This document shows positions 1-12,190 of a stretch of DNA of 64,000 bases, one piece after another. The stretch is taken from the sequence record ON529853.1. One strand, given 5' to 3'. Below the pieces are notes generated by a model. That model worked only from the letters and a program-made list of their open reading frames with translations, was not told the DNA's origin and did no database searches. Both the position numbers and the translations under genes were made by a program. Each line of letters begins with the position of its first letter. The stretch's first letter is position 1.

Positions 1-363
1 AATGTTAAGCAGGGCTTCCACGTCTTGACGCGGTTTCTGCGGGATACCCGTCGGGTGGGCCGAAGGGCTGTTGTCGTTGTTCGACACGGCCTTCGTCCCC
101 GACGGTTAGCACGTTGATAATGACGCGGAGGCTACGCGGAAACCCCTTGAAAGTCAAGATTTTTGGCAACGATTGCCAGCCAATAAATTCCTTGACGAAG
201 CACAGCGCCGGAATCACAACACCCCGCACCGGACGGGGGCCAGTGCGGGGTGTTGCTTGACGACGGAGGACAGGGTCAGCCGGACTAGGCCCCGTGGCTG
301 ACGACGTGCCTGATGCTTCTGTACGTGGAGGTGCGCCGCGTGTCAACCCTCTCGGTCAGATAA

Positions 364-444
364 TGGCGGGGGCGGAGGGAATCGAACCCCCTGGTTGACG
401 CCTTCGGAGGGCGTTGCCTACATTCCGGTCGGCACTTCGCCCCC
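364..444 (-). tRNA. trnR: tRNA-Arg(CCG)
   Basis: Cloverleaf; anticodon arm ACGCC-CTCCGAA-GGCGT; TTCGATT T-loop; encoded CCA. Confidence 0.9.
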
Positions 445-482
445 GAGGCGGTGGGCCGGGCGGACCCGGCGTTAAGTAAGAG

Positions 483-564
483 TGGCGCCCAAGGCAGGAT
501 TTGAACCTGCGTTTGCAACTCCGCTACGGATAAGGCCTTCGTAGGACCCCTCGGTTACTTGGGC
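483..564 (-). tRNA. Atypical tRNA-Arg(ACG)-like, no D-arm, long variable region
   Basis: Perfect acceptor GCCCAAG/CTTGGGC+G+CCA; T-arm GCAGG-TTCAAAT-CCTGC; loop CTACGAA; only 7-8 nt where the D-arm should be. Confidence 0.6.
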
Positions 565-567
565 ATT

Positions 568-651
568 TGGCTCCTATGAGAGGACTCGAACCTCTAAGTC
601 TTGCGACGGTCGATTAACAGTCGACTGCGTTTACCATTCCGCCACATAGGA
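568..651 (-). tRNA. trnN: tRNA-Asn(GTT) with extra variable arm
   Basis: GTCGA-CTGTTAA-TCGAC; variable hairpin GTC-GCAA-GAC; CCA. Confidence 0.9.
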
Positions 652-676
652 ACAAACTGAATACTGATGTTTTACC

Positions 677-750
677 TGGTTCTGGCTCTAGGAATCGAAC
701 CTAAATCTCGGAGACCAAAACTCCGCGTGATACCGTTACACTAAGCCAGA
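677..750 (-). tRNA. trnQ: tRNA-Gln(TTG)
   Basis: CGGAG-TTTTGGT-CTCCG; CCA. Confidence 0.9.
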
Positions 751-761
751 TCAGGAAAACT

Positions 762-839
762 TGGTAGGAGGTACTGGATTCGAACCAGTGAAATGTCGGT
801 ATGTAACACCGATGCCTTGGGCCGCTTGGCGAACCTCCC
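762..839 (-). tRNA. trnV: tRNA-Val(TAC)
   Basis: TCGGT-GTTACAT-ACCGA (G32); CCA. Confidence 0.8.
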
Positions 840-884
840 ATGAAAGAGTAGCGTATCTCCACTACTCAGTGACAAAAGTAAAGT

Positions 885-961
885 TGGTCCTAGCACCAGG
901 ATTTGAACCTGGGACCGAGCGGTTATCGACCGCGCGCTCTACCAAACTGAGCTATGCTAGG
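885..961 (-). tRNA. trnI: tRNA-Ile(GAT)
   Basis: GCGG-TCGATAA-CCGC (C33); CCA. Confidence 0.85.
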
Positions 962-965
962 GCTG

Positions 966-1040
966 TGGTAGCGGATACAGGAATCGCACCTGTGCTTGTC
1001 GGCGTGTCATACCGATGCCTTTCTACTTGGCTAATCCGCC
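966..1040 (-). tRNA. trnV: tRNA-Val(GAC)
   Basis: TCGGT-ATGACAC-GCCGA; T-loop TGCGATT; CCA. Confidence 0.8.
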
Positions 1041-1053
1041 ACACAGGAAAAGG

Positions 1054-1128
1054 TGGCCCACCCAGGAGCGCTCGCATCTCCGTCTCGGGGATTTCACTCC
1101 CGTGCTAATCTGTCTCAGCTATGAGTGG
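1054..1128 (-). tRNA. trnF: tRNA-Phe(GAA)
   Basis: CGGGA-GTGAAAT-CCCCG; divergent T-loop TGCGAGC; CCA. Confidence 0.75.
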
Positions 1129-1129
1129 A

Positions 1130-1213
1130 TGGTGGGAAGGGAGAGAATTCGCACTCTCACAGCTTGCGCGGGGGATTTACAGTCCCTTGGGCTCACTCGT
1201 GCCCAGCCTGCCC
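1130..1213 (-). tRNA. trnY: tRNA-Tyr(GTA)
   Basis: AGGGA-CTGTAAA-TCCCC; variable arm; CCA. Confidence 0.85.
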
Positions 1214-1280
1214 AAAATGTTACGGCTCAGTCGCCGCCGGTCATGGTGATCTCCTGGATCAGATGAAGGTGTTGAAACGG

Positions 1281-1316
1281 AAAAGGCCCGCCTGGTGGAA
1301 ACCAGGCGGGCCTTCG
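1281..1316 (-). terminator. Attenuator terminator upstream of tRNA array 1
   Basis: 14-bp stem AAGGCCCGCCTGGT/ACCAGGCGGGCCTT followed by TTTTCCGTTT on the minus strand. Confidence 0.9.
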
Positions 1317-1345
1317 AAACTTGGGTGTTCTAAGTGGGTATCAGA

Positions 1346-1441
1346 TTAAATCTGCGTCCCACCATCGCCCATGCACGAATGGCCCGCCCGGTTAAACCGG
1401 ACGACCTGAATCTGCTGCACGTTGTTGCGATAGGTGAACAT
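1346..1441 (-). CDS. Leader peptide of tRNA array 1, MFTYRNNVQQIQVVRFNRAGHSCMGDGGTQI (31 aa)
   Basis: ATG 7 nt after a -10 box (leaderless geometry); codons match all nine downstream anticodons; contains antiterminator segment. Confidence 0.85.
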   Translation of the reverse strand: MFTYRNNVQQIQVVRFNRAGHSCMGDGGTQI

Positions 1442-1448
1442 GAGGAGA

Positions 1449-1477
1449 CATTTACTACAGGTGGCGGGCAGTGTCAA
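1449..1477 (-). promoter_or_regulatory. sigma70-type promoter of array 1 leader
   Basis: TTGACA-N17-TAAATG. Confidence 0.8.
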
Positions 1478-1479
1478 CA

Positions 1480-1692
1480 TTATTGTCGACGATGGACCCA
1501 AGTTTTTTCGATCTCGCGATCCCAGACGCCCCAATTGCCGTCCGTCGGATAGTCGCGGTAGCGCCAGCCGCCGCAGTAACGGCACATGGCTTCGGTCTGG
1601 TCAGCCTCAGCGGGATGCGGCTCGCAGTCCCCCGAGACGTCGCACAAAGGCCACCCGTCCGGCCCCAGGGTGGGGTCGTCCGGGTCCGTCAC
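1480..1692 (-). CDS. Hypothetical protein, 70 aa, Cys motifs
   Basis: GTG start in GTGA overlap with upstream stop. Confidence 0.65.
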   Translation of the reverse strand: MTDPDDPTLGPDGWPLCDVSGDCEPHPAEADQTEAMCRYCGGWRYRDYPTDGNWGVWDREIEKTWVHRRQ

Positions 1693-1985
1693 AGCGTGTA
1701 GTCGACAGCGGGGTCGGGAAGCCAGACCTCTTCCAGCAGACGTTCCTGCCACTGGGCCTCGTGGTCCCAGGACAGGATCACGCCGGACCGCGTTTCGCTG
1801 CCGTCGGTCAGCGTCGCGCAGCCGTAGACGTCAAAGGGAGGCGCGCCATCATAGGAATGATGGCGCAAGGTATAGTGATGGGGACCGTTGCCGCCGCACC
1901 AGCGCACCAGAACTTTCGCTCCGTCGGGGAGAGCGCGGATTTCGGCCGGGGTCAGCCTGGGGGTATCGGGGACGGCGTGGGTCAT
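1689..1985 (-). CDS. Hypothetical protein
   Basis: Coupled ORF in operon. Confidence 0.7.
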   Translation of the reverse strand: MTHAVPDTPRLTPAEIRALPDGAKVLVRWCGGNGPHHYTLRHHSYDGAPPFDVYGCATLTDGSETRSGVILSWDHEAQWQERLLEEVWLPDPAVDYTL

Positions 1986-2248
1986 CAGGCGGGGTTCGGC
2001 GGCGTATACGGCATGGGGCGCAGACGGGGCTCGGTGCGCGGATGACTGATTCCGGTCGGCATGATGTTCAGTTGCAACCCGGCGCCCCGGCGCAGCAGCA
2101 TCATGAAGTCATGGGCACGCACAGCCTCGGCCGGCGAGGCGAATGCCAGTTCGATCAGCACGCGATTGCTGTCGGTGCTGCACGCGGTCGCGATCTCGTC
2201 AGGCTCCAGGTCCAGAGCCTGCGTGGGACTGATGTTGAGCCGGCTCAT
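1985..2248 (-). CDS. Hypothetical protein (MSRLNISP...)
   Basis: ATGA overlap with def stop. Confidence 0.7.
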   Translation of the reverse strand: MSRLNISPTQALDLEPDEIATACSTDSNRVLIELAFASPAEAVRAHDFMMLLRRGAGLQLNIMPTGISHPRTEPRLRPMPYTPPNPA

Positions 2249-2787
2249 GCGCGTTTCATCCGACGCACGTTGTCCTGGTGCTTCTTCAGCAGCATCGCCC
2301 GCTTCAGCGGCGAGACCCGGTCGATGTTGCGCACCCCGTCCAGGTGGTCCATCTCGTGCTGAAGGCAAATGGCCTTGTAGCCCTTGCCGGAGAGGCTCTG
2401 CATACGGCCGTGAATGTCCTGGTATTCGACCGTCACTTCCCGATGCCGTCGCACGGGGAAAAAGACGCCCGGCATGGACAGGCATCCCTCCGGCATCTCG
2501 ATCATGTCCTCGGACTTGTCGACGAACGTCGGGTTGATCAGGATCAGTTTGGGACGATCGACCATGGCGTCCTGCACCGGCAGGCCAACATCCGGCAGGT
2601 CGATCATGGTGAAGATGCGCAAGGGCACGCCGACCTGAACGGCGGCGAGCCCCGCGCCTTCCGCCAGCAACATGGTGTCGACCATGTCGAAGCAGAGCGC
2701 CCGCACCTCGTCGGTGATCTCGAAGACCGTATCAGAGGGCTTCGTCATCCGGGCGTCGGTGCAGGGGATGATCTGGCGCAGCGCCAT
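2245..2787 (-). CDS. def: Peptide deformylase
   Basis: Signature motifs GAGLAAVQVG, EGCLS, QHEMDHLDG. Confidence 0.97.
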   Translation of the reverse strand: MALRQIIPCTDARMTKPSDTVFEITDEVRALCFDMVDTMLLAEGAGLAAVQVGVPLRIFTMIDLPDVGLPVQDAMVDRPKLILINPTFVDKSEDMIEMPEGCLSMPGVFFPVRRHREVTVEYQDIHGRMQSLSGKGYKAICLQHEMDHLDGVRNIDRVSPLKRAMLLKKHQDNVRRMKRA

Positions 2788-3014
2788 TAGGGCAGGCTCC
2801 CCAGGCCGCCGGCGGCGGAAGCCCGCCCATCACGCCAGCGGCCGACGGCGCTGACCATCCGATCGGCCTGGCCCTCGACGACTTCCAAGACGTCGATCGC
2901 CTGCATCAGCGCCATGCGCGCGTCTTCCAGGTCAAGGTCCTGGAGTTTGACAATGCGGCCCCGCACCACGACCTGATAGTCGTGGTACGGCGCCCGTTCG
3001 GCCACTTCGGACAT
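2787..3014 (-). CDS. Hypothetical protein
   Basis: Coupled ORF. Confidence 0.7.
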   Translation of the reverse strand: MSEVAERAPYHDYQVVVRGRIVKLQDLDLEDARMALMQAIDVLEVVEGQADRMVSAVGRWRDGRASAAGGLGSLP

Positions 3015-3017
3015 GGC

Positions 3018-3311
3018 TCAGATTTCGCCGAGCGCGCTCAGGTACAGGTCCAGGATGGCGTCTTCTTCCTGGCGCTTGGCCTTGTCCTGCTTGCGCAGGC
3101 GCAGCACCTTGCGCAGAATCTTCACGTCGTATCCCTCGCCCTTGGCTTCGGCGAAGACTTCCTTCATGTCGACCATGACGGCCTGCTTGTCCTCTTCGAG
3201 GCGCTCCAGCCGCTCGATGATCGAGCGCAGGCGGCCCTGGGCGGAGGCGGTCAGGGCGTCGTCGGCCGACATGGCGTTGGCGGGCTCGACGCCGGTGGTG
3301 GTCTCGGTCAT
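3018..3311 (-). CDS. gapR: GapR-like (DUF2312) nucleoid-associated protein
   Basis: LRSIIERLERLEEDK...EAKGEGYDVKILRKVLRLRK...EEDAILDLYLSALG. Confidence 0.9.
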   Translation of the reverse strand: MTETTTGVEPANAMSADDALTASAQGRLRSIIERLERLEEDKQAVMVDMKEVFAEAKGEGYDVKILRKVLRLRKQDKAKRQEEDAILDLYLSALGEI

Positions 3312-3335
3312 AGGTCTCTCGGGGTTGGTCGCCGG

Positions 3336-3584
3336 TTATCCGGTGATGAGGAAACGGAGGACGGCGAGAAGTTCGCGGTCCGCATCAGGCTGTAGGGCCT
3401 TCTGGTCGATGAGGCGCAGGGCGGCGTTCTTGCGCGCCTGCTTCTTGGCGGCGTGGACGCCGAGAGTTTGCGCCAAGGCGCGCATCTCGGTCTCGTCCAC
3501 ATAGGCGCCGAGCGCATCCCCATACCGCCGGTTGGCGGGATAGGTGGCGTAGTCGGGGGCGAGCGGCGGTAGGCCGTCCATCAC
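3336..3584 (-). CDS. Hypothetical protein
   Basis: GGAGA RBS; GTGA overlap. Confidence 0.6.
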   Translation of the reverse strand: MMDGLPPLAPDYATYPANRRYGDALGAYVDETEMRALAQTLGVHAAKKQARKNAALRLIDQKALQPDADRELLAVLRFLITG

Positions 3585-3757
3585 ATGTCTCCACAAGGAT
3601 CGTGCAGGGTGTCGCCCTGGTCGAGGTCCTCGACGAAACGGCCGTCCCGGAAACGACCGGTGGTGGTCTGGCCGTTGAGCCGGCGCACGACCCGCAACTG
3701 ATGGTCCAGCCAGTAGTAGGGCACGCCCCACGCCTCGCGGTAGACCGGCTCGGTCAC
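3581..3757 (-). CDS. Hypothetical protein
   Basis: GTGA overlap with upstream stop. Confidence 0.6.
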   Translation of the reverse strand: MTEPVYREAWGVPYYWLDHQLRVVRRLNGQTTTGRFRDGRFVEDLDQGDTLHDPCGDM

Positions 3758-4014
3758 GAGTAGGTCGCGCCTGAAGCGCGAACCACCAGATCGGCGACAG
3801 GTTTGCCGTGGGCGACGATCATCTCGTCGTAGGTGTTGATGTGGAAACGCATCAGGGCGTTGTCGACCGTCTGCCAGGCGTAGGCCTTCCACGCGTCGCG
3901 GGCGTCTTCGCGGCGCGTGAAAGACCCCACGAAGATGATCTTGCGCGGATCGCGGAAGGCTTCGTCGCGGGGATGGGGGTGCTCGCCCCCATAGACGTAA
4001 TAGGTGTCAGGCAT
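3754..4014 (-). CDS. DUF4170-like protein
   Basis: YVYGGE...FVGSF...AWKAYAWQTVDNALMRFHI pattern, recognised by eye. Confidence 0.75.
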   Translation of the reverse strand: MPDTYYVYGGEHPHPRDEAFRDPRKIIFVGSFTRREDARDAWKAYAWQTVDNALMRFHINTYDEMIVAHGKPVADLVVRASGATYS

Positions 4015-4016
4015 GC

Positions 4017-4904
4017 TTACAAAGTCACGATCAATCGGGGATTGAAGTTCGGGTTCAGTTCATGCCCGACATAGCCGCGCGGATTGCAGATCACGCGGGT
4101 CTCGCCGATCTGGTAGTCGCTGCTGTCATGCATATGACCATGGACCCACAGGGCGGGCTCCCATTCCAGCATCAGCGGCTCCAGCCGCGAGGCGTAGGCC
4201 GGGTTCAGCGGCGATCCCCGATAGCGATGGTGGCTCGACTGCTCCGACGGCGCATGGTGAGTAATCACCACGGTCGGGCCGTCATGCGGAACCCGTAGCG
4301 TTTCGGCCAGGAAGAACCGGCTCTCCAGGTGAAGGCGCCGCGTGTCTTCCGCCGTCAGGCGCTGCTGCTGCTTCAGTTCGATCTGCTGATAGTCGTTCAT
4401 ATCGGACTGGGCGTGCCGGATCGACAAGGGCCAGGTCCCGTAGAGATCGAAGTCGGTCCACAGGGTGGCGCCGAGGAACCGGACGTCGCCCATATGGACC
4501 TGCTCGTTATCCATGACGAAGACGCGGGCGGGCGCCAGTTCGTCCGCCTTGGCCTTCATCTTCTCGATGTGGCGGTGGTAGCGCCGCTTGCCGTAGAACT
4601 CGTGGTTGCCCGGCACATAGAGGCAAGGGACGTCAGGGAAATGACGCGCCAGCCAGATCACGCCGACGACGCCCGTCGCCAGGTCGCCGGCGGCGATGAC
4701 CAAATCGATCTCGTCCGCCGTCGGCGCCGTCCAGGTGCGCCGGTCCATGCCGCCGAACTCCAGATGGAGGTCCGACAGGATCAGGGCGCGCAAGGGCCGT
4801 CGTCCGGACCGGCGCTGCGCCAGGCCGGCTTCGATGTCGGCCTGCATGTCGGCCGCAGCCGCCACGGTGAACTCCATCTCAGCCTTGCTCCACTCGGTCT
4901 CCAT
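4017..4904 (-). CDS. Calcineurin-like metallophosphoesterase
   Basis: SDLH, AGD, GNHE, THH, HGH motifs. Confidence 0.93.
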   Translation of the reverse strand: METEWSKAEMEFTVAAAADMQADIEAGLAQRRSGRRPLRALILSDLHLEFGGMDRRTWTAPTADEIDLVIAAGDLATGVVGVIWLARHFPDVPCLYVPGNHEFYGKRRYHRHIEKMKAKADELAPARVFVMDNEQVHMGDVRFLGATLWTDFDLYGTWPLSIRHAQSDMNDYQQIELKQQQRLTAEDTRRLHLESRFFLAETLRVPHDGPTVVITHHAPSEQSSHHRYRGSPLNPAYASRLEPLMLEWEPALWVHGHMHDSSDYQIGETRVICNPRGYVGHELNPNFNPRLIVTL

Positions 4905-4924
4905 CGTGGAGCATCCTTGAAATC

Positions 4925-4999
4925 TGGAGCGGGTGGACAGACTCGAACTGCCGCCTCCGGGTTAGCCACCCGGCGCTCCTGGGTCCACGCGAACCCCCG
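4925..4999 (-). tRNA. Atypical tRNA-like gene (GCT anticodon, short variable loop)
   Basis: CCGGG-TGGCTAA-CCCGG; TTCGAGT T-loop; CCA; mismatched acceptor stem. Confidence 0.55.
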
Positions 5000-5282
5000 A
5001 CGATGATTCGCGTGATCATCGTCGGCCCTAGAGCCTCACCCGCATAAGTTGGCAGGAGTTTTCAGATATGGCGAGCCATACCCAGGGCGACCCTCCTGCC
5101 AGGAACCCCCGTCTCGGTTTCTTTCACCGGCCCCGACACGAGCACCTGTCAAAGCCTATTTAGCCGTCAGGCTTGTGAGAACAAGAGAGGCGATTAGGCG
5201 CCTCTCGATGAACCACGTTGCGGACGGACGTAACATCGGCTTGCCGTGATTACTGGCAGACGGCGCCGTAGCTGTCAACAAT

Positions 5283-5317
5283 GAAAAACGCCCCGACCTT
5301 TCGATCGGGGCGTTCTT
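5283..5317 (-). terminator. Intrinsic terminator
   Basis: AACGCCCCGA-TCGAAAGG-TCGGGGCGTT followed by TTT. Confidence 0.8.
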
Positions 5318-5628
5318 CAGAGATTCGCCATCCACTGCTTGCGGCAGCGGGTGTGGTCCTTCCAGGACTTGCCGCCGGGACGCGACGCCATGAGGTCGTC
5401 GTAGGACGACGGCAGGACCATCCGGCGGCCACGGGCGCGGTAGAGGCGGTCGTGGGCTTCGCCGGTGTTGCGACGCCGCTCCTGCATGGTGCGGGGGCAG
5501 CGATGCATGTAGCGCCAGCGATGGCGGAAACGCCGGCAGCGGTAGGGCTCGCCGGGCTCCAGGTAGAGGACGCGCCAGCCCACGAAGTAGAAGCCGGTGT
5601 GGGTGACGCGTTCAAATTGGGGCTTCAT
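5317..5628 (-). CDS. Small basic Arg-rich protein at the end of tRNA array 2
   Basis: AGGAGG RBS; C-terminal LPSSYDD...KSWKDHTRCRKQW. Confidence 0.75.
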   Translation of the reverse strand: MKPQFERVTHTGFYFVGWRVLYLEPGEPYRCRRFRHRWRYMHRCPRTMQERRRNTGEAHDRLYRARGRRMVLPSSYDDLMASRPGGKSWKDHTRCRKQWMANL

Positions 5629-5728
5629 GACAGCCTCCTGCTAGGTTGAGTACCTAGCGGGTGCTGTATTCCAGGTAGAATTTGATCATGGCCGCATCCT
5701 ATCTCAAGCGGGGCGGTTCGTCGAGGAA

Positions 5729-5817
5729 TGGCGGATGGGGCAGGGATCGAACCCGCGTAACCCTCTCGGGTGTCGACCGCTTAGCAAGCGGCTGCCTTAC
5801 CTCTCGGCCACCCATCC
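5729..5817 (-). tRNA. trnS: tRNA-Ser(GCT)
   Basis: GCCGC-TTGCTAA-GCGGT; long variable arm; CCA. Confidence 0.93.
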
Positions 5818-5824
5818 GGGGTGA

Positions 5825-5909
5825 TGGCGGTGCGCCAGGGAATCGAACCCTCAACCTTGCGGTCGGCGACGGTTTTCAAGGCCGCTTGTCCCCATGGACG
5901 CTGCACACC
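5825..5909 (-). tRNA. trnS: tRNA-Ser(TGA)
   Basis: Loop CTTGAAA; long variable arm; CCA. Confidence 0.85.
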
Positions 5910-5914
5910 AAAGA

Positions 5915-6005
5915 TGGCGGACGGCACGCGATTCGAACGCGTGGGACCCAGGGGGTCCGCCTGCTTTCCAAGCAGGTGCCTTAAGCCGGGCTCAGCCAGC
6001 CGTCC
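5915..6005 (-). tRNA. trnS: tRNA-Ser(GGA)
   Basis: CCTGC-TTGGAAA-GCAGG; CCA. Confidence 0.92.
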
Positions 6006-6010
6006 GGTCT

Positions 6011-6228
6011 TGGTGGAGGCGAGGGGATTCGAACCCCCGTAGACGCCGAACCCCCGCATTACCGAGGGCCGATCTCAGGTTTAGAACGCGTGTGCCGTCC
6101 TGACCATCTTCCGCAGGCCAGGAGGTCTATCGTAACGACCCCGTCGATCGGTTGCCTCTGCGTCCCGGATTTACCCGGACCGTTGTTCTGTTCCACGGTG
6201 CTCATGCCGAAACCCGAGCGACGCCCCC
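6011..6228 (-). ncRNA. Short tmRNA-like RNA with Ala-type acceptor (218 nt)
   Basis: 5' GGGGGCG pairs with 3' CGCCTCC-A-CCA (G3.U70); canonical T-arm; structured insert of over 100 nt; no canonical tag frame. Confidence 0.65.
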
Positions 6229-6238
6229 GTGAAGGAAA

Positions 6239-6326
6239 TGGAGGATGGTGTGGGATTCGAACCCACGGAACCTTGCGGTCCTCCGGCTTTCGAAACCGGC
6301 GCGATCGGCCACTCCGCCAACCATCC
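6239..6326 (-). tRNA. trnS: tRNA-Ser(CGA)
   Basis: CCGGT-TTCGAAA-GCCGG; CCA. Confidence 0.93.
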
Positions 6327-6333
6327 AGAACAG

Positions 6334-6522
6334 TCAGGCCGAGGCCGGACTGTAGTTGTCGATGTCGTCGACCCGGATCGCCGTGCCCGCCGCAATCTGG
6401 CGGTCGGCGCTCAACAGGTCGGCGACCAGGTCGTCGGCCGAGACGGCGGTGCCGAGGGTGGCGAACTTCACGTTCACCAGGCGGCCGTCCGCAAACATCT
6501 CGTCGATCGCGGCGCGATCCAT
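6334..6522 (-). CDS. Hypothetical protein inside tRNA array (62 aa)
   Basis: AAAGGT RBS; fills gap between tRNAs. Confidence 0.7.
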   Translation of the reverse strand: MDRAAIDEMFADGRLVNVKFATLGTAVSADDLVADLLSADRQIAAGTAIRVDDIDNYSPASA

Positions 6523-6555
6523 GATAGACCTTTCTGCCGGACGCGCCGGCGGTGA

Positions 6556-6626
6556 TGGTGGAGACAGTGGGGCTCGAACCCACCAAGGCGTCCTTGCAAA
6601 GGATGCCTGCGCCCTGCGCTGTCCCC
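6556..6626 (-). tRNA. trnA: tRNA-Ala(TGC)
   Basis: CATCC-TTTGCAA-GGACG; G3.U70; CCA. Confidence 0.9.
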
Positions 6627-6663
6627 GTAGGGGTTGATCGTCAGCCATGCTGACAACCATTGT

Positions 6664-6739
6664 TGGTCCTGGCACTCAGATTCGAACTGAGCCATCGTGC
6701 TCCACAAACACGCGCCTCCACCGCAGAGGCTTTACCAGG
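6664..6739 (-). tRNA. trnH: tRNA-His(GTG), no G-1, A73
   Basis: CGTGT-TTGTGGA-GCACG; CCA. Confidence 0.9.
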
Positions 6740-6741
6740 GT

Positions 6742-6829
6742 TGGTCGCGACGACAGGGATCGAACCTGCCCGGCCTCTCGGCCACTACCACCTCAAGGTA
6801 GCGCGTCTACCAGACTCCGCCACGTCGCG
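6742..6829 (-). tRNA. trnL: tRNA-Leu(GAG)
   Basis: CTACC-TTGAGGT-GGTAG; CCA. Confidence 0.93.
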
Positions 6830-6838
6830 ATCGAATGT

Positions 6839-6924
6839 TGGTGCCCGACCCCGGACTCGAACCGGGACGCCACGAGGGCCACGCCTTTTGAGGGCGCTGT
6901 GTCTACCGTTCCAGCCAGACGGGC
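6839..6924 (-). tRNA. trnL: tRNA-Leu(CAA)
   Basis: GCGCC-CTCAAAA-GGCGT; CCA. Confidence 0.93.
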
Positions 6925-6933
6925 AGTGAAAGA

Positions 6934-7020
6934 TGGTGCGGGTGAGAGGATTCGAACCTCCCCGGCACAAAGGCCACGAGTACCTGAGACTCGCGCGGCT
7001 ACCAACTTCGCCACACCCGC
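6934..7020 (-). tRNA. trnL: tRNA-Leu(CAG)
   Basis: CGAGT-CTCAGGT-ACTCG; CCA. Confidence 0.93.
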
Positions 7021-7025
7021 ATTTT

Positions 7026-7108
7026 TGGAGAACCCTGGTGGAGTCGAACCACTTGCGCCTGGATTAAAAGCCCAATCCCGGCCACCCGGATTTAACGCTC
7101 AAGGTCCC
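7026..7108 (-). tRNA. trnK: tRNA-Lys(TTT)
   Basis: TTGGG-CTTTTAA-TCCAG; enlarged D region; CCA. Confidence 0.8.
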
Positions 7109-7120
7109 CTAAAATGATGT

Positions 7121-7211
7121 TGGTGAACGTGGTCGGACTCGCACCGACGATGAAGGTTGTAACCTAACGGGATTAAGAGCCCCGGCCTCTCGCTACTGAG
7201 GTGACACGTCC
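7121..7211 (-). tRNA. trnK: tRNA-Lys(CTT) with long variable arm
   Basis: CGGGG-CTCTTAA-TCCCG; T-loop TGCGAGT; CCA. Confidence 0.8.
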
Positions 7212-7249
7212 AAAACTGTTGTTCTTCTCCTGAAGACTTGATATGTGCA

Positions 7250-7320
7250 TGGAGCCGGCGGACGGTGTCGAACCGTCCCATGTCCACTACGAAAGGTCAG
7301 CCCTGCCACCAGGCGCCGGC
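7250..7320 (-). tRNA. trnT: tRNA-Thr(CGT), weak anticodon stem
   Basis: Perfect acceptor GCCGGCG/CGCCGGC; loop TTCGTAG; CCA. Confidence 0.65.
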
Positions 7321-7328
7321 GTTGTTGT

Positions 7329-7399
7329 TGGTGCCAAGGGAGGGAGTCAAACCCTCGCTGAACCCATACCAAGGGCTCGACCGATCACCCGGCCTTGGC
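7329..7399 (-). tRNA. trnT: tRNA-Thr(GGT)
   Basis: AGCCC-TTGGTAT-GGGTT; CCA. Confidence 0.8.
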
Positions 7400-7407
7400 G
7401 TTGAAGA

Positions 7408-7482
7408 TGGTCGGAACACCGGGATTCGAACCTGGGACCCCTAGCTTCCCGAGCCAGTGCGCTACCGCTGCGCTACATTCCG
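7408..7482 (-). tRNA. trnP: tRNA-Pro(GGG)
   Basis: CTGGC-TCGGGAA-GCTAG (C33); CCA. Confidence 0.88.
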
Positions 7483-7491
7483 ATTTGAAGA

Positions 7492-7568
7492 TGGTCGGCG
7501 AGGGAGGATTCGAACCTCCGATCCCTCCGACCCGAACGGAGTGACTTACCAGACTTGCCCACACGCCG
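7492..7568 (-). tRNA. trnP: tRNA-Pro(CGG)
   Basis: CTCCG-TTCGGGT-CGGAG; CCA. Confidence 0.92.
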
Positions 7569-7577
7569 ATGGAAACG

Positions 7578-7611
7578 AAAAAAGGCCCCGGAGGCTATGC
7601 GCCTGGGGCCT
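7578..7611 (-). terminator. Attenuator terminator upstream of tRNA array 2
   Basis: AGGCCCCAGGC...GCCTCCGGGGCCT followed by a T-run. Confidence 0.9.
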
Positions 7612-7682
7612 GAAACAACTGCTGTTTTGGGATTCAGCAGGTGATCGGCCCCTTAAGGGCGCCTCACCTGCGAGGACTGGAC

Positions 7683-7817
7683 TTAGGGCCAGCCTTCCAA
7701 GGAGACGCCACCGGTGGTGGGGGACTTCGGCGACAGTTTCGTCGGCGCATGCGCGAGCGTCGACAGCGCCGTGGCGGCGGTCGAAAGATGGCTCAGCTTG
7801 TGCGACAAGGTAGTCAC
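7683..7817 (-). CDS. Leader peptide of tRNA array 2, MTTLSHKLSHLSTAATALSTLAHAPTKLSPKSPTTGGVSLEGWP (44 aa, GTG start)
   Basis: Codons 2-35 encode only T/L/S/H/K/A/P, the amino acids of the downstream tRNAs. Confidence 0.85.
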   Translation of the reverse strand: MTTLSHKLSHLSTAATALSTLAHAPTKLSPKSPTTGGVSLEGWP

Positions 7818-7869
7818 GATGAAGGTCCAGTCCGAAGAAGGAGCGCGAATGCGCTGTGATGAAGTCTGA

Positions 7870-7898
7870 TCTCTACAGGAAGCTTGAGCGTATGTCAA
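7870..7898 (-). promoter_or_regulatory. sigma70-type promoter of array 2 leader
   Basis: TTGACA-N17-TAGAGA. Confidence 0.8.
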
Positions 7899-8095
7899 GA
7901 ACTTCAGCAGAAAAAGTTGGTAGAGGGGCTGATCGCGCTTGTCGAGCGACCCTCTCGAAACGCCTTGTGCCAGGATCGGCGGCGATCGTCAACAGGGAAA
8001 ATGCACGCGCGCGGCCGAGGGGGAGCGGAAGACCGCGCGCGTGCCCGGCAGACCGTCGGGGGACGGGGCCTGGGTCGTCGGGGGACGGGGAGGGG

Positions 8096-8332
8096 TCAGC
8101 CGGCGCGGCGCTTGAGCGTCTCGTGCAGCGGCGGATAGGGGACCGGGCCGTAGATCACCTCGACGAGGCGAGGGCGGCGGCCGGTGCGGATTTTGGAAGG
8201 CAGGGGCACGTTGCGGCGCCGCAGTTCGGCGGCGGCGGCGGCGCTCGCCAGGGAGCCTGACAGGTAGACGCCGATCAGTTCGGCGACCGTCAGGGTCATC
8301 ATGCGCTGGGCGCGGGTGGTGTTGTGAGCCAC
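8096..8332 (-). CDS. Hypothetical protein
   Basis: GGAGA RBS; downstream terminator-like hairpin at ~8000-8045. Confidence 0.65.
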   Translation of the reverse strand: MAHNTTRAQRMMTLTVAELIGVYLSGSLASAAAAAELRRRNVPLPSKIRTGRRPRLVEVIYGPVPYPPLHETLKRRAG

Positions 8333-8430
8333 GAGGGTCTCTCCATCTGGATGTGATCCAGGCGGGAGACGCGGTTTCGCGCTGGGTGACCGGTGTGGTC
8401 CCCGTCCTGGAAATTACCAGATGCGAGAGT

Positions 8431-8622
8431 TTAGTCGGAGGGCTTGGCCCCGAAGACCGAGGCGATCGCCGTCAAAGCCTTCTTGACCCGGTTGGGTCGC
8501 TGGGTCAGCGCCGAGGCGCAGACCTTCTTGATTTCGTCGAGGGTGAGCGAGGCCGGGTCACGCAGGCCGCGCGCGGCGATCGAGCCGACGCTGGCGGAGG
8601 TGACTTCGGGGGTGGTGCTCAT
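8431..8622 (-). CDS. Hypothetical protein (63 aa)
   Basis: GAGG RBS directly after tRNA-Asp. Confidence 0.65.
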   Translation of the reverse strand: MSTTPEVTSASVGSIAARGLRDPASLTLDEIKKVCASALTQRPNRVKKALTAIASVFGAKPSD

Positions 8623-8633
8623 GGAAAAACCTC

Positions 8634-8708
8634 TGGCGAGTCCAAGGGGAGTTGAACCCCTCTCTCCACCGTGACAGGGTGGTGTCCTAACCGATAGACG
8701 ATGGACCC
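8634..8708 (-). tRNA. trnD: tRNA-Asp(GTC)
   Basis: CCACC-CTGTCAC-GGTGG; CCA. Confidence 0.93.
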
Positions 8709-8739
8709 GTATCAGAGGGTCGATCCGCAGGAAGATGCT

Positions 8740-8817
8740 TGGAAGGGCGCCGGAGACTCGAACTCCGCTCACTTGGTTGAAAGCCAAGTATCCTGCAAAC
8801 CGCTAGACGAGCGCCCC
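8740..8817 (-). tRNA. trnE: tRNA-Glu(TTC)
   Basis: CTTGG-CTTTCAA-CCAAG; CCA. Confidence 0.92.
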
Positions 8818-8913
8818 ATAAAGCACAGGGCGTCGAACACGAGAGCCGCGATTAGGCGGCGGTCGTATCTCGGCCCTGGAAGGCCTCTCGTTCGTAGCTG
8901 GTCAGACGGTAGG

Positions 8914-9129
8914 TCATTTGGTGCTTGTAACAGAACTGTCGGTGGGTGTCAAGAAGGACGGCGAATCTTTTTTGGCCTTTCGGGCGGGACGATCTTCCTC
9001 GCCCTCAGGCTCGGCCGCGTCCCAGCCCATCCACAGGGCCGCGAGAAAGGCAGGCGGACCCATCAGGGCTTCCAACCGCTTCAAGGCCCGGTCGTTGGCC
9101 GCCAGGAAGGCGTCGCCGTATTCAAGCAT
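8914..9129 (-). CDS. Hypothetical protein (71 aa)
   Basis: GAGGT RBS before ATG at 9129. Confidence 0.55.
   Translation of the reverse strand: MLEYGDAFLAANDRALKRLEALMGPPAFLAALWMGWDAAEPEGEEDRPARKAKKDSPSFLTPTDSSVTSTK
8924..8952 (-). promoter_or_regulatory. Promoter for the Glu/Asp tRNA pair
   Basis: TTGACA-N17-TACAAG. Confidence 0.7.
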
Positions 9130-9269
9130 GGAACCTCGGAGGATACAGGGACAGGCTTCAATGGGCGGCGTTTGACCGCGCCCATCTCGGCGGTAGCAGC
9201 GCACCAGCCCTGCTCGGCTGGCCCCGCCCCTCGTTCCGGCATGTGCCAGGATCGACGGCAAAGGTCAAG

Positions 9270-9577
9270 GGGGGAATTGCGGTGGGTACAGCTTCAACCG
9301 GCCTTGCGGCCTGCGGGTCTTTCGGGCGTCCTGCCCACCGCGCCTACTACGACGCCTTTTTCGGCCCCGGCGCGCCGGAGAAGAAAAATCGACGGGTGAC
9401 CGCTACCGGCCTCGCCTGCTGGCCCGTCCCAGCGCCTGACCTTCTCGACGCGACGCCCTTGTGGGCGTTATGGCCTTCCCGTCCGAAGACAGACGCCGCG
9501 AAGGGTCAGCGGGACCGCATGATCGTCAGCCGCACGGCCAGCGCAGCGAGAGGTTCAGAGGCCTGTCCCGGAAAGAG
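9270..9577 (-). ncRNA. Unknown structured RNA directly downstream of tRNA-Gly
   Basis: Two multibranch domains with long closing stems and UUCG/GAAA/GCAA tetraloops; no credible ORF. Confidence 0.6.
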
Positions 9578-9652
9578 TGGAGCGACTGGTCGGAATCGAA
9601 CCGACGTCCCCAGGTTGGAAGCCTGGTGCTAAGGCCCCTCAGCTACAGTCGC
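9578..9652 (-). tRNA. trnG: tRNA-Gly(TCC)
   Basis: CCAGG-CTTCCAA-CCTGG; U73; CCA. Confidence 0.93.
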
Positions 9653-9666
9653 AGTATAAAACAAGG

Positions 9667-9742
9667 TGGAGCGACTCTCGGGACTCGAACCCGACCCTGC
9701 GCGTTGGCAACGCGTTGTACCCACCCATAATACGTGAGTCGC
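9667..9742 (-). tRNA. trnG: tRNA-Gly(GCC)
   Basis: ACGCG-TTGCCAA-CGCGC; CCA. Confidence 0.9.
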
Positions 9743-9754
9743 ATGGTTAATAAA

Positions 9755-9836
9755 TGGCACGGGTGGAGGGATTCGAACCCCCGACATATGCTGGTTTTGG
9801 AGACCAGTGCCTTGAGCCAGACTTGGCGACACCCGT
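9755..9836 (-). tRNA. trnW: tRNA-Trp(CCA)
   Basis: CTGGT-CTCCAAA-ACCAG; CCA. Confidence 0.92.
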
Positions 9837-9849
9837 GTAAACTTGAAGG

Positions 9850-10374
9850 CTACTTGTAGCGCTCTTGGAGGAACTTGACAACCCGCTGCGGCGTACTTTC
9901 GTCTGCGGTGGTCCGGAAATCGATCCGGTCCCCCAACAGCGCCAGCAGTTTCTTGTCCACCTCCAGGGCCTCCCTCTCGTTGTGGTGGCGGCCGTAGGTC
10001 TGATAGGCGGACGCCGGTCGATCGAGCCAGACGTTGACGTTCTCGTAGGAATCAAAGAGGTCGAAGACCTCCTGGTGGAACTCCGGCTGGGCGTAGTCGC
10101 CCTGGCCGTAGATGCAGCCCAGCAGCAAGGGGCTGTCGGTCAGAATCCAGTCGACGTGCCCGAGAAACCGTTTCAGCCGCGACGCCTGCTTCCAGGTGAC
10201 GCGCCGTTGATCCGCCAGGGTCGCCCAGTCCTTAGAGACAGAACGCTCAGTGGCGTATTCCTCGACCTGGGCGGCGCGGTAGCCGCCGATCTTCATGTGA
10301 AAGAAGGTGCCGGCCTTGACCGTCGACTTTCCGCCGCACGGGCCGGACCAGAAGTTCAGGACACGCGTCGTCAT
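9850..10374 (-). CDS. P-loop NTPase/kinase (NadR/AAA_28-like)
   Basis: N-terminal SGPCGGKST Walker A; ILTDSPLL. Confidence 0.8.
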   Translation of the reverse strand: MTTRVLNFWSGPCGGKSTVKAGTFFHMKIGGYRAAQVEEYATERSVSKDWATLADQRRVTWKQASRLKRFLGHVDWILTDSPLLLGCIYGQGDYAQPEFHQEVFDLFDSYENVNVWLDRPASAYQTYGRHHNEREALEVDKKLLALLGDRIDFRTTADESTPQRVVKFLQERYK

Positions 10375-10445
10375 TCAGCAAACGGACTTTCAACCGGCTG
10401 GCAGGATTCAGGTTTTGCGGGGGTGGCGCAGTGCGCCGGCAGGTC

Positions 10446-10745
10446 TTAGCTGCGCCAGCTTCCGTCGGCGTCGTCAACGACGTCCGTGGAATCCAGGTCG
10501 GCTTCGACCGTCCGGCGCTGTCGACCTCGGCCGCGTCCGCGCGGCGCCTCTTCAGCATCCTCGGGCTCGGCCAAGACGATGAGGGCCTCGACATCGTCGA
10601 CGACGATCTCAACCGGAGCGACGACTTCGACGCGAGTCCAGGGCGTGCGCGACCAGCCGTGCTCAAGCACGAGGTTGCTCGCCTTCGCCGTGGGAACGTC
10701 GAAGGGCTCGCAAGTTTCCGGATGATAAACGCGCTCGGTAGCCAT
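10446..10745 (-). CDS. Hypothetical protein, N-terminus resembles 26276-26824 product
   Basis: VYHPETCEPFDV...NLVLEHGWS vs IYDPNGNPEKH...DLVVGAGYT. Confidence 0.7.
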   Translation of the reverse strand: MATERVYHPETCEPFDVPTAKASNLVLEHGWSRTPWTRVEVVAPVEIVVDDVEALIVLAEPEDAEEAPRGRGRGRQRRTVEADLDSTDVVDDADGSWRS

Positions 10746-10790
10746 AGTGAGGGACCTTATACGAACTGCACGCGATTGTCAATTATTACG

Positions 10791-11576
10791 TCAATCGAGC
10801 GCCCATCGGAACCATACGGCCTTCTTCTCTCCCGGCGTTTCCGCGTATTCAGCCTCCACGGGCGTGACGAAGTCGTTGAGGAAGGCGCCGTTCAGAAAAT
10901 CGCCCGTCGCCCGATGGCCGAGGATGAAGCGCGGGGGTCCGCCAGGTCCGTAGGTGTCGAACCCTTGACCGATGCGTCCGCCCGCAAGGCGTCGAACCGT
11001 ACACGCGGCCTGGGTCCAGAGGTAGGCGCGGTAGCGGCCGCGCCGCAGGCGCGTGTTGAGCGCCAGGCGCAACATGGACCCGACAGGCGGGGCTGCCTCA
11101 ATGTGGGAGAAGACGAGTTGATCGGCGGCGTCATACAGGCCGATCCGCACCGCGCCGGCGCCGGCAGTCACCCAGACGCCGGCTTCGACCAGGCGAATCG
11201 TATCCGAGGCGACGTAGAAATCTTCAAACAGAATGGTTTCGGGCGGCAGGTCGACATCTTCCGGAGCCCCGTCCAAGGCCAGGCCAGGAACGGCGAACCC
11301 GCCCGGCGGCAAGTCTACCGCCACGACCCCGTCGACGACCGCCAGCGGCGCGAGGTCCGGGTCCCAAACCAGGACGCCGGCCTTGCGCGTCAGGGGCGCG
11401 CCTTGCGGTCCTGCCGCCGGGGCGACGCCGGAGACGGCGGCCGGCAGGTGGATGGATTCAGGGCGTCCCTCGACGCGAATGTGCAGCGTCCGGTCAGCCG
11501 TGTTGTGCCCGACCTGACCCGGCAGCAGATGCGGGCGCGCCTTCGGCGTGGAGGAGTGTTTGTTCTGGACCGCCAT
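10791..11576 (-). CDS. Putative virion fibre-associated protein
   Basis: In structural operon; fibre-type LPGQVGHNTADRTL motif. Confidence 0.65.
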   Translation of the reverse strand: MAVQNKHSSTPKARPHLLPGQVGHNTADRTLHIRVEGRPESIHLPAAVSGVAPAAGPQGAPLTRKAGVLVWDPDLAPLAVVDGVVAVDLPPGGFAVPGLALDGAPEDVDLPPETILFEDFYVASDTIRLVEAGVWVTAGAGAVRIGLYDAADQLVFSHIEAAPPVGSMLRLALNTRLRRGRYRAYLWTQAACTVRRLAGGRIGQGFDTYGPGGPPRFILGHRATGDFLNGAFLNDFVTPVEAEYAETPGEKKAVWFRWALD

Positions 11577-12190
11577 CAGAGGAACCGCAGGGAAACGACA
11601 TGGTGTTGAGGGGTAGGGGACCAGGGAGACACCGTCCGCACCTGCTCCACGATCATGTTCGACGTCGTCGGCGTGGTCTCGATCGTGTAATGCCCCGGCG
11701 CCAACGAGAGATCAAAACCAGGCTCCAACGTGAGGACGCCATTGATGGCGAAGGCGTGCGTTACGATCATGACGCCTTTTGCATCGAGAAGGCGGGCCGT
11801 CAGCGTGCCCGTCCCGCCTGCGCCGCGCACCCGCATCGCGATCAACTGGGCCGGCTCCAGCAGAGTGATCGAAGCGGTCCGCACCACGGAGCCGAACGGG
11901 AGCAGGCTCACTTCCAGGGGCGCACATCCGGGCAGAACCCACAGCTTGCGATCCATGGGTCGGCCGCCGCCGCCGGCCTGTAGCGGCCCGTGCACGACGC
12001 CGCCCTCCGTCATCAGGCGGACGTCGTCGCCGCCGAGCGTGCGTTCGGGCAGCAGGGGCACGTCCATATCGAACGCATCCGTCCCGACGCCCAGGATGCG
12101 GGCCGCCGGATCGAGCGTCAGTTCGCCCGGCGCGCGCGGCTGGGGCGGGTTGGCCTCATAGGGCGTCAGGTAAATGGTGTCAGGCATCAG
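11576..12190 (-). CDS. Putative virion structural protein
   Basis: ATGA-coupled; PGELTLDPAARIL motif. Confidence 0.65.
   Translation of the reverse strand: MMPDTIYLTPYEANPPQPRAPGELTLDPAARILGVGTDAFDMDVPLLPERTLGGDDVRLMTEGGVVHGPLQAGGGGRPMDRKLWVLPGCAPLEVSLLPFGSVVRTASITLLEPAQLIAMRVRGAGGTGTLTARLLDAKGVMIVTHAFAINGVLTLEPGFDLSLAPGHYTIETTPTTSNMIVEQVRTVSPWSPTPQHHVVSLRFL

Follow-up and report, generated by a model that had tools for sequence, protein, structure and literature searches.

A candidate multivalent leader-peptide attenuator upstream of a tRNA array in Brevundimonas phage vB_BpoS-Bambus

What decides when the transfer RNA (tRNA) arrays of a large phage are transcribed? The question is raised by the first 10 kb of a 64,000-nucleotide stretch of sequence record ON529853.1 (hereafter the window), which holds four tRNA clusters and in which all of the features under study lie on the minus strand. 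Over its first 3 kb the window matches Brevundimonas phage vB_BpoS-Bambus (Bambus; ON529853.1, 348 kb) with 100% identity; this phage belongs to the phiCbK group, the Dolichocephalovirinae. Along the direction of transcription the clusters follow one another as Trp-Gly-Gly (array 4), Glu-Asp (array 3), a long Pro...Ser array (array 2) and array 1, with small protein genes, among them one for peptide deformylase, separating the Pro...Ser array from array 1. Several views of what such arrays do for a phage are familiar from the literature on phages T4 and T5, vibriophages and mycobacteriophages. They have been seen as a means of codon-usage compensation, of replacing host tRNAs after shut-off and of escaping anticodon nucleases (PMC9127768, PMC3556154).

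Here we describe an element that precedes array 1 and that, judging from its sequence, is very probably a multivalent, ribosome-mediated leader-peptide transcription attenuator controlling the phage tRNA operon. An earlier note made from the letters of the window (the original prediction) had arrived at the attenuator reading. This reading is favoured because a short open reading frame (ORF) of regulatory codons, leader 1, is followed by a terminator placed before the tRNA genes, because an antiterminator can form on the 5' arm of that terminator and because an anti-antiterminator lies over the codons; conservation, covariation and the match between leader and array lend it further support. 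The parts of the element, together with the array, are the following.

1449-1477, minus strand: predicted promoter of leader 1, with a -35 element TTGACA (1477-1472), a spacer of 17 nucleotides (nt) and a -10-like element TAAATG (1454-1449)
1441-1346, minus strand: leader 1 ORF of 31 codons plus stop, MFTYRNNVQQIQVVRFNRAGHSCMGDGGTQI, with its ATG at 1441-1439 and its stop codon TAA at 1348-1346
1388-1438, minus strand: regulatory codons 2-18, of which 16 out of 17 specify F/Y/R/N/V/Q/I, the set carried by the nine tRNAs downstream
1396-1406, minus strand: segment 1, GGUCGUCCGGU, codons 12-16, the 5' strand of the anti-antiterminator hairpin formed with segment 2
1376-1392, minus strand: segment 2, ACCGGGCGGGCCAUUCG, codons 17-22, whose partner is either segment 1 or the terminator 5' arm (antiterminator)
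1334-1363, minus strand: stop-codon hairpin, with the leader 1 TAA (1348-1346) in its loop
1275-1316, minus strand: intrinsic terminator, with segment 3 at 1316-1301, a loop, segment 4 at 1296-1282 and a U-rich tract at 1281-1275
367-1213, minus strand: array 1, the first part of which holds Tyr-GTA (1213-1130), Phe-GAA (1128-1054) and Val-GAC (1040-966)
Middle of array 1, minus strand: Ile-GAT (961-885), Val-TAC (839-762) and Gln-TTG (750-677)
Last part of array 1, minus strand: Asn-GTT (651-568), Arg-ACG (564-483) and Arg-CCG (444-367)

The codons of the leader provide the most direct link to the array. Both the ORF sequence given in the original prediction and the count of 16 out of 17 codons falling within the amino-acid set of the array were confirmed at these positions, and each of the nine anticodons does have a readable codon in leader 1, as had been claimed; the leader codons are decodable by array 1's own tRNAs. 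Among 90,974 stop-free stretches of 17 codons in the six frames of the 64-kb window, this match to the set is unique to leader 1, with a binomial probability of 1.7e-7 per stretch, and it is not a product of chance.

We then compared ten more genomes (Kikimora, Bajun, phiCbK, Colossus, CcrPW, CcrBL10, Rogue, RB23, CcrSC and CcrBL9), which together with Bambus make up a conservation sample of 11 Dolichocephalovirinae infecting Brevundimonas or Caulobacter. The leader 1 ORF is present in all 11, examples being MMTYRQNVQNIRVVRFYRAG... in Kikimora, MSKTYRQFVRQIQVVRNIRAG... in phiCbK and MMTYRNNVRQIRVRQFNLAG... in Colossus. Across a 15-column core (10 phages), 146 of the 149 residues belong to F/Y/R/N/V/Q/I, and 13 of at least 16 derived core residues stay within this set, many of the swaps being chemically radical and requiring two base changes (N/F, V/R, Q/R, N/Y/I/F). 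The probability of substitutions preserving the set in this way is 8e-5 when proteome frequencies are assumed, and 2e-6 when single-base neighbours are. By this comparison of sequences, what is conserved in the core of leader 1 is the amino-acid set and not the peptide. More broadly, a distant BLASTN search matched the leader region in 53 records of Dolichocephalovirinae phages of Brevundimonas and Caulobacter, with identities as low as about 70%, and a pattern scan of IMG/VR for the signature of leader plus terminator returned the same isolate genomes only, plus one unrelated terminator pair (L012).

The sequence upstream of leader 1 contains the TTGACA-N17-TAAATG promoter originally proposed, present at 1477-1449 as read in the sequence, with 7 nt between TAAATG and the ATG, and no Shine-Dalgarno sequence is visible upstream of that ATG. 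A generic sigma-70 scan did not return this promoter because its -10 hexamer ends in G, where the strict rule wants a T. TTGAC precedes the ATG by 36 nt in nine of the 11 phages compared and by 37 nt in the remaining two, and the intervening bases have diverged. From this fixed 36-nt spacing (17-nt spacer, 6-nt -10 element and 7 nt) we infer that transcription starts at the A of the ATG, and hence that the mRNA is leaderless. Caulobacter has 375 leaderless mRNAs, which are translated as well as its other mRNAs (PMC4117421).

Within and downstream of the codon run, the transcript can form alternative helices. The terminator stem, GAAGGCCCGCCUGGU (1315-1301) paired with ACCAGGCGGGCCUUU (1296-1282), is G+C-rich and is followed by a U-rich tail; a terminator had been placed at 1281-1316 from the outset, and only the length of 14 base pairs (bp) given to its stem has to be revised, to 15. 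A generic terminator scan missed it because the U tract is partly absorbed into the stem, and the phiCbK and Colossus annotations list rho-independent terminators at the orthologous sites. The predicted 16-bp antiterminator between codons 17-22 and the terminator 5' arm was likewise recovered, with positions 1392-1376 pairing with 1316-1301 as 12 + 4 bp around a one-base bulge. The anti-antiterminator hairpin formed by segments 1 and 2 (1:2), which was absent from the original prediction, spans 1406-1381 and overlaps the regulatory codons.

These helices are conserved. Ten leaders were aligned from the ATG to the U tract, and pairing was expressed as the paired share of alignment cells. The terminator (3:4) is paired in 97.9% of cells, with 4 compensatory pairs; the antiterminator (2:3) in 91.9%, with 4 pairs changed on both sides; and the 6-bp core of the 1:2 hairpin (codons 14-15 with the start of segment 2) in 91.7%, with 2 compensatory pairs. 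Shifting the partner by 1-3 columns lowers pairing to 24-63% overall, and to 31-52% for the antiterminator. One G-C pair of the antiterminator has become A-U in Bajun, CcrSC and CcrBL9, and in CcrSC and CcrBL9 the 3' arm of the terminator has changed as well. Applied to the same alignment, RNAalifold independently predicts the 1:2 hairpin and the terminator, with 8 compensatory pairs. The 167-nt Bambus leader folds with a z score of -6.4 relative to dinucleotide shuffles, the 1:2 hairpin is present in the minimum-energy fold of both the nascent and the full transcript, and, as long as the 3' arm is untranscribed, segment 3 has segment 2 as its minimum-energy partner.

This conservation bears on a reading without attenuation, in which the hairpin simply terminates the protein operon upstream (peptide deformylase and its neighbours), the ORF encodes a functional micropeptide, and the tRNAs are expressed through leakage or from another promoter. 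The ORF does lie directly after a protein gene, with an in-frame upstream ATG in Bambus that overlaps the stop codon of that gene (TAATG). Moreover, leaders are entered in GenBank as hypothetical proteins, leader 1 in a 44-amino-acid form, and the phiCbK version of the leader that precedes array 2, hypothetical protein gp083, has a PHROG family of its own, of unknown function; the leader 1 peptide has no PHROG family match. It is, however, only the amino-acid set of the core that is conserved, and the upstream extension of the ORF is not conserved in the relatives. The -35 element keeps its fixed distance of 36 nt from the ATG, no further promoter-like site is present between the leader 1 terminator and the first tRNA, and a plain terminator would need neither an antiterminator nor an anti-antiterminator, let alone conserved and covarying ones. 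We therefore consider a micropeptide next to an ordinary operon terminator very improbable.

A further reading, to which we give hardly any credence, dispenses with translation altogether and supposes that the leader RNA binds tRNAs directly, by T-box-like pairing of codon and anticodon, or else soaks them up. The codons for all of the tRNAs in the array are indeed displayed in a row, but they are so in one frame, running from a conserved ATG to a conserved stop codon in a hairpin loop, and no T-box or other Rfam family is found at 1275-1441. A cmscan of positions 1-12000 (E <= 1) gave no T-box match; the leader 1 region has no Rfam match at or near gathering level, and the stretch 1275-1364 has chance-level small RNA matches only (E 0.23-0.65). 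To our knowledge, a run of fifteen adjacent specifier codons has no precedent among T-box RNAs.

For attenuation by a translating ribosome, the effect of ribosome position on the helices was modelled by folding a nascent transcript that ends just before the terminator 3' arm, with a 28-nt stretch held single-stranded. In Bambus, the terminator 5' arm pairs with upstream RNA by 16-19 kcal/mol when the A site of the ribosome is at codons 2-9, by 26-30 kcal/mol at codons 10-13, by 24 kcal/mol at codon 14, by 2-5 kcal/mol at codons 17-25, and by 15 kcal/mol once the A site reaches the stop codon. Nine phages give profiles of this shape, with an antiterminator of 25-30 kcal/mol at codons 10-14 and of about 3 kcal/mol at codons 16-25, and in leaders with one extra codon the maximum moves to codons 11-15. 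At minimum energy the full-length RNA retains the antiterminator only with the ribosome at codons 11-13, and otherwise folds into the 1:2 hairpin and the terminator. The model suggests that stalls near codons 10-14 matter most and that the codons are not all equal. The original prediction had inferred that loss of any of these host tRNAs would switch on the array; its stalling logic is supported, with a weight that, by folding, differs among the codons.

All 11 leaders have a hairpin whose loop contains or borders the stop codon, with stem sequences that differ. Since it is placed between segments 2 and 3, this hairpin may serve as an RNA polymerase pause or coupling element.

Bambus contains two sister elements, which precede arrays 2 and 3.

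7575-7898, minus strand: leader 2 element before array 2, with TTGACA at 7898-7893, an ORF at 7817-7683 (VTTLSHKLSHLSTAATALSTLAHAPTKLSPKSPTTGGVSLEGWP, then stop), a structured spacer and a terminator at 7611-7583
8830-8952, minus strand: leader 3 element before array 3 (Glu, Asp), with TTGACA at 8952-8947 and an ORF at 8917-8852 (MTYRLTSYEREAFQGRDTTAA, then stop)

Array 2 comprises two Pro, two Thr, two Lys, three Leu, one His, one Ala and four Ser tRNAs, several of which were found at relaxed settings only, and one Thr-GGT by eye only. The hairpin with a U tract at 7611-7583 stands directly before tRNA-Pro. After the start codon of leader 2, the first 33 codons all encode T/L/S/H/K/A/P (33/33), which makes this the sole such place in the window, and leader 2 is conserved in the relatives. 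The two sets are disjoint, in that leader 1 has 1 of its 17 residues in the set of array 2, and leader 2 has none of its 33 in the set of array 1. In addition, rare codons of leader 2 address particular isoacceptors: TTG is matched by Leu-CAA, AAA by Lys-TTT, CTT/CTC by Leu-GAG and AGC by Ser-GCT. In the simple folding model the effect of ribosome position on leader 2 is weak. Its terminator, like those of the Lacusarx and L02 leaders described below, was read by eye; automated picking mis-parsed the long structured spacers. The pairing of the 3' end of the leader 2 ORF with a stretch containing GGCGCC suggests a relay of alternative helices, and by eye a GGGGCC (at about 7652-7647) can pair with an upstream GGCGCCC or with the terminator 5' arm. 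Leader 3 is near-leaderless, and its E-x-E...D pattern lies in hairpins and is conserved in all relatives; in phiCbK its terminator is clear and has an Asp codon in its 5' arm.

We also observed that in the Caulobacter phages the first two or three codons after the start come from the set of the other array (stretches L003, at 11977 and 10176, L007 and L008). Leader 1 there starts M-S-K-T/S, with residues of array 2, and leader 2 starts M-F or M-T-R-I, including residues of array 1. These swapped early codons may reflect chance or cross-talk.

If leaders poll their own arrays, their composition should follow the arrays in related phages, a check that the original prediction had proposed. This is what we find, in the set-preserving substitutions of leader 1, in leader 2, in the Bertelyviruses and in the phages Lacusarx and L02. 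A relocated Trp tRNA closes array 2 in the Bertelyviruses RB23, CcrSC and CcrBL9, and these three alone have a Trp codon in the codon run of leader 2 (...LTLASWPASSK...). Sphingobium phage Lacusarx (Lacusarxvirus) and Erythrobacter phage vB_EliS-L02 distribute their tRNAs over arrays in another way, and carry five further codon-matched leaders (two and three, respectively) that are unannotated in their records.

3392-3544, 4983-5082 and 6514-6629 (stretch L023): leaders of vB_EliS-L02
5377-5518 and 6749-6851 (stretch L020): leaders of Lacusarx

In vB_EliS-L02, MFNVIAMNNPAPAIMVPVAMACVEGTRD (a leader cited also as NVIAMNNPAPAIMVPVAMA) precedes a Pro-Pro-Met-Val-Ile-Ala-Asn array, MTFGRTKRDRREGDERGFTS precedes a Lys-Lys-Gly-Gly-Asp-Ile-Glu-Glu-Arg-Arg-Phe-Arg array and MFTQTALHLLTQTTLCWQCQYSSLSPF precedes a Ser-Tyr-Leu-Leu-Thr-His-Gln-Gln-Ser-Cys-Trp-Thr array. 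A hairpin with a U tract comes after each of these leaders, and in leader A the stop codon again lies in a hairpin. In Lacusarx, ...FTRFGKRDRREGERGF precedes a Lys-Lys-Gly-Asp-Glu-Glu-Gly-Arg-Phe array, and MFTQTTLLTQCHYWQLLSSSSL, with TTGACA 36 nt before its ATG, precedes a Ser-(Tyr)-Leu-Leu-Thr-His-Gln-Ser-Cys-Trp array; no convincing matched ORF is present upstream of the first Lacusarx array (Pro...). In this lineage a ...CHYW... stretch occurs in the leader of an array with Cys, His, Tyr and Trp among its tRNAs. When eight leaders were scored against eight array sets, the matrix was diagonal-dominant, each leader matching best its own array or the orthologous array of another phage, with the weak Glu/Asp leader of Bambus as the exception. 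Every amino acid of an array is present in its own leader, except for Ile in one case. Codons for Val, Ile and Asn keep company with those for Pro, Ala and Met in vB_EliS-L02, and with those for Tyr, Phe, Gln and Arg in Bambus, mirroring the tRNA genes.

Ruegeria phage RpAliso served as a negative control: its tRNA clusters lack matched leaders, which argues that the match is not an automatic by-product of tRNA clustering. Two Rhizobium phages, RHph_X66 and RHph_TM16, which had come up through a Tyr-like tRNA only, were rejected as candidates: their two or three tRNAs come straight after a gene, and a leader is absent.

The same comparison helps to weigh the idea that the element is a real attenuator which senses translation in general, through the 70S ribosomes used for leaderless initiation, the rate of elongation or a polymerase slowed by (p)ppGpp, and thus serves as a timer or growth-state switch. 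The leaderless layout would make initiation sensitive to the state of the ribosome, and failed translation might give read-through, as the antiterminator is favoured without a ribosome. Yet a switch of this kind offers no account of why each leader consists of exactly the amino acids that its array serves, the sets being disjoint within one genome, or of why substitutions stay within the set and composition follows the arrays in Lacusarx and L02. We regard it as an unlikely explanation.

Of the specific attenuator, the sequences themselves show the parts, their conservation, the covarying competing helices and the agreement of leaders with arrays in several phage lineages; leader translation, the coupling of ribosome and polymerase, and the physiological trigger are inferred. 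In the mechanism that we propose, transcription would begin at or beside the ATG of the 31-codon leader 1, and a ribosome would translate the leader as RNA polymerase heads for the terminator. With charged tRNA plentiful, the ribosome would run through segment 2 (codons 17-22); once it has gone past, the 1:2 hairpin could re-form, the terminator (3:4) would fold and the transcript would stop before the tRNAs. With any cognate tRNA scarce, the ribosome would stall in the codon run, most effectively at about codons 10-14, where it would cover segment 1 and leave segment 2 free. Free segment 2 and the terminator 5' arm would then form the 16-bp antiterminator, leading to read-through and synthesis of the phage tRNAs. 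As these accumulate, stalling would end and the operon would close itself, in a negative feedback on tRNA supply.

As to what would set off this response, leader 1 would react to any shortage of cognate charged tRNA, including amino-acid starvation and feedback from the phage tRNAs. Loss of host tRNAs is one plausible trigger, and the sensor need not be specific to loss caused by a defence nuclease; host shut-off, the demand of late infection, amino-acid shortage and tRNA-cleaving defence could all act through the same sensor.

Several observations weigh against this proposal. With respect to folding, the antiterminator is already favoured by 7-16 kcal/mol in the absence of a ribosome, before the 3' arm has been made, so that termination must rely on kinetics (the 1:2 trap, pausing and timing), and a ribosome stalled at codons 2-9 does not disrupt the 1:2 hairpin in the equilibrium model. 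With respect to the match between leaders and arrays, leader 3 matches its array weakly (3 of 20 codons) and has a weak terminator in Bambus; array 4 (Trp, Gly, Gly) has no leader; and the tail of Bambus leader 2 contains a W although array 2 has no Trp tRNA. Array content is also nearly invariant within the Dolichocephalovirinae, and independent co-variation therefore rests on the Trp case and on the Lacusarx/L02 lineage. Four of the nine array 1 tRNAs are atypical, and neither Rfam nor ARAGORN at default settings detects those for Tyr and Phe. Finally, more tRNA is no cure for amino-acid starvation, which would also trip the sensor.

The nine tRNAs claimed for array 1 nevertheless stand as a count, with those for Tyr, Phe and the two Arg being the atypical ones. 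ARAGORN at default settings calls five of the genes (Val-GAC, Ile-GAT, Val-TAC, Gln-TTG and Asn-GTT), and GenBank annotates those five only. The Rfam tRNA model adds two above its gathering score, at 367-444 (35.3 bits) and 486-564 (32.1 bits), and Tyr-GTA and Phe-GAA appear in relaxed ARAGORN only. By eye, the Bambus Tyr and Phe tRNAs have complete acceptor and anticodon arms and end in CCA, with unusual T-loops (TGCGA for TTCGA) and D-loops without GG. Their positional equivalents are called at default settings in other phages, Tyr in Kikimora and Bajun, and Phe in phiCbK, Rogue, RB23, CcrSC and CcrBL9. Relaxed ARAGORN reads the tRNA at 564-483 as Arg-CCT; by eye its loop is CU-ACG-AA, giving ACG, and the genes that correspond to it in Colossus, CcrPW, RB23, CcrSC and CcrBL9 are called Arg-ACG.

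The phiCbK genome paper lists tRNAs and predicted terminators, reports that Rfam found no functional RNA besides tRNAs, states that Thr and Tyr tRNAs are absent and never mentions attenuation or leaders. Relaxed searches find Tyr and Thr tRNAs, to which the invariant Tyr codon and the Thr codons of the leaders point; leader composition thus flags tRNAs missed by gene finders. In the window, about ten tRNA-like genes (Tyr, Phe, two Arg, two Thr, two Lys and Ser-TGA) are missed by GenBank and by default ARAGORN. They lie at 1054-1213, 367-564, 7026-7400 and 5825-5909 on the minus strand, and their existence was foretold by the leader codons.

Some further features were noted around the arrays.

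1244-1227, minus strand: five-codon mini-ORF ATG ACC GGC GGC GAC TGA with a strong Shine-Dalgarno sequence AGGAG at 1255-1251, between the leader 1 terminator and the first tRNA
215-346, minus strand: candidate small RNA after array 1, with TTGACA at 346-341, about 90 nt without an ORF at the start and a hairpin with a T tract at 238-222
6011-6142, minus strand: fragment resembling transfer-messenger RNA (tmRNA), between two Ser tRNAs
7967-7992 and 9243-9268, minus strand: repeated motif TTGAC(G/C)-N14-TGGCACA, each copy followed by G+C-rich structured RNA

Mini-ORFs of this type, such as MTGGD or MNNGG, are present in Kikimora, Colossus, CcrPW, CcrBL10 and Rogue, and not in phiCbK. Kikimora shows the layout of the candidate small RNA as well, and the phiCbK annotation has a terminator at the corresponding site. 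The tmRNA-like fragment scores 31.9 bits (gathering score 47; E = 8e-10), and the related phage Lacusarx has an annotated full tmRNA. In the repeated motif, TGGCAC resembles the -24 element of sigma-54 promoters but lacks the TTGC that should follow; Kikimora has CTGACA at the same places.

Looking beyond array 1, we lean on balance towards the broader view that large phages of Alphaproteobacteria carry 'sense-and-replace' tRNA modules, in which each leader would poll the tRNAs of its own array, depletion would induce that array alone and its products would switch it off again. These would be the most multivalent attenuators known, with up to eight amino acids, and the first on tRNA genes, and their leaders could be used to predict cryptic tRNAs. 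If this is true, leader-peptide attenuation regulates tRNA genes and couples decoding capacity directly to tRNA synthesis by feedback, which would account for the timing and dosing of the many tRNAs of jumbo phages. Each array would be induced by loss of the very tRNAs that it replaces, which would tie the arrays to host tRNA depletion and to tRNA-targeting defences, and the leaders would be natural sensors of translation capacity with seven or eight inputs.

How does such an element compare with known systems? The original prediction knew of no codon-matched attenuator on a phage tRNA array, and in open-access full text we found no description of leader-peptide attenuation of tRNA genes or phage arrays, an earlier mention elsewhere being possible. 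The arrays share with those of big lytic phages a large tRNA cargo that is thought to sustain translation when host tRNAs run short. Prior literature treats phage arrays as constitutively or temporally expressed, and a built-in sensor of the encoded tRNAs is undescribed there. The closest known attenuators are those of ilvGMEDA (Leu/Val/Ile), ilvBN and thr (Thr/Ile), whose leaders are multivalent, as leader 1 would be. Like these and the trp, his, leu and pheA leaders, leader 1 is a short ORF with clustered regulatory codons, and it shares with the enterobacterial attenuators the arrangement of four segments forming helices 1:2, 2:3 and 3:4, in which, as proposed here for the phage, a ribosome stalled on hungry codons selects the antiterminator.

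A link between a component of the decoding machinery and the charging or supply of tRNA, made through conditional termination, is also found in pheST with its pheM leader, in control of the thrS type and in T-boxes. The T-boxes of Gram-positive bacteria, however, bind uncharged tRNA directly, without a ribosome, and leader 1 has no T-box motif; pheM responds to one amino acid and controls a synthetase, whereas leader 1 would respond to many and control tRNAs. The phage elements differ from the enterobacterial attenuators in their apparently leaderless mRNA and in the extra, conserved stop-codon hairpin. They also differ in their phage setting, with several elements per genome, each tuned to its own array, and in the number of amino acids represented, which is seven or eight per phage leader against two or three in the ilv and thr leaders. 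Above all, enterobacterial attenuators regulate biosynthetic enzymes, whereas what leader 1 would regulate is the tRNAs themselves.

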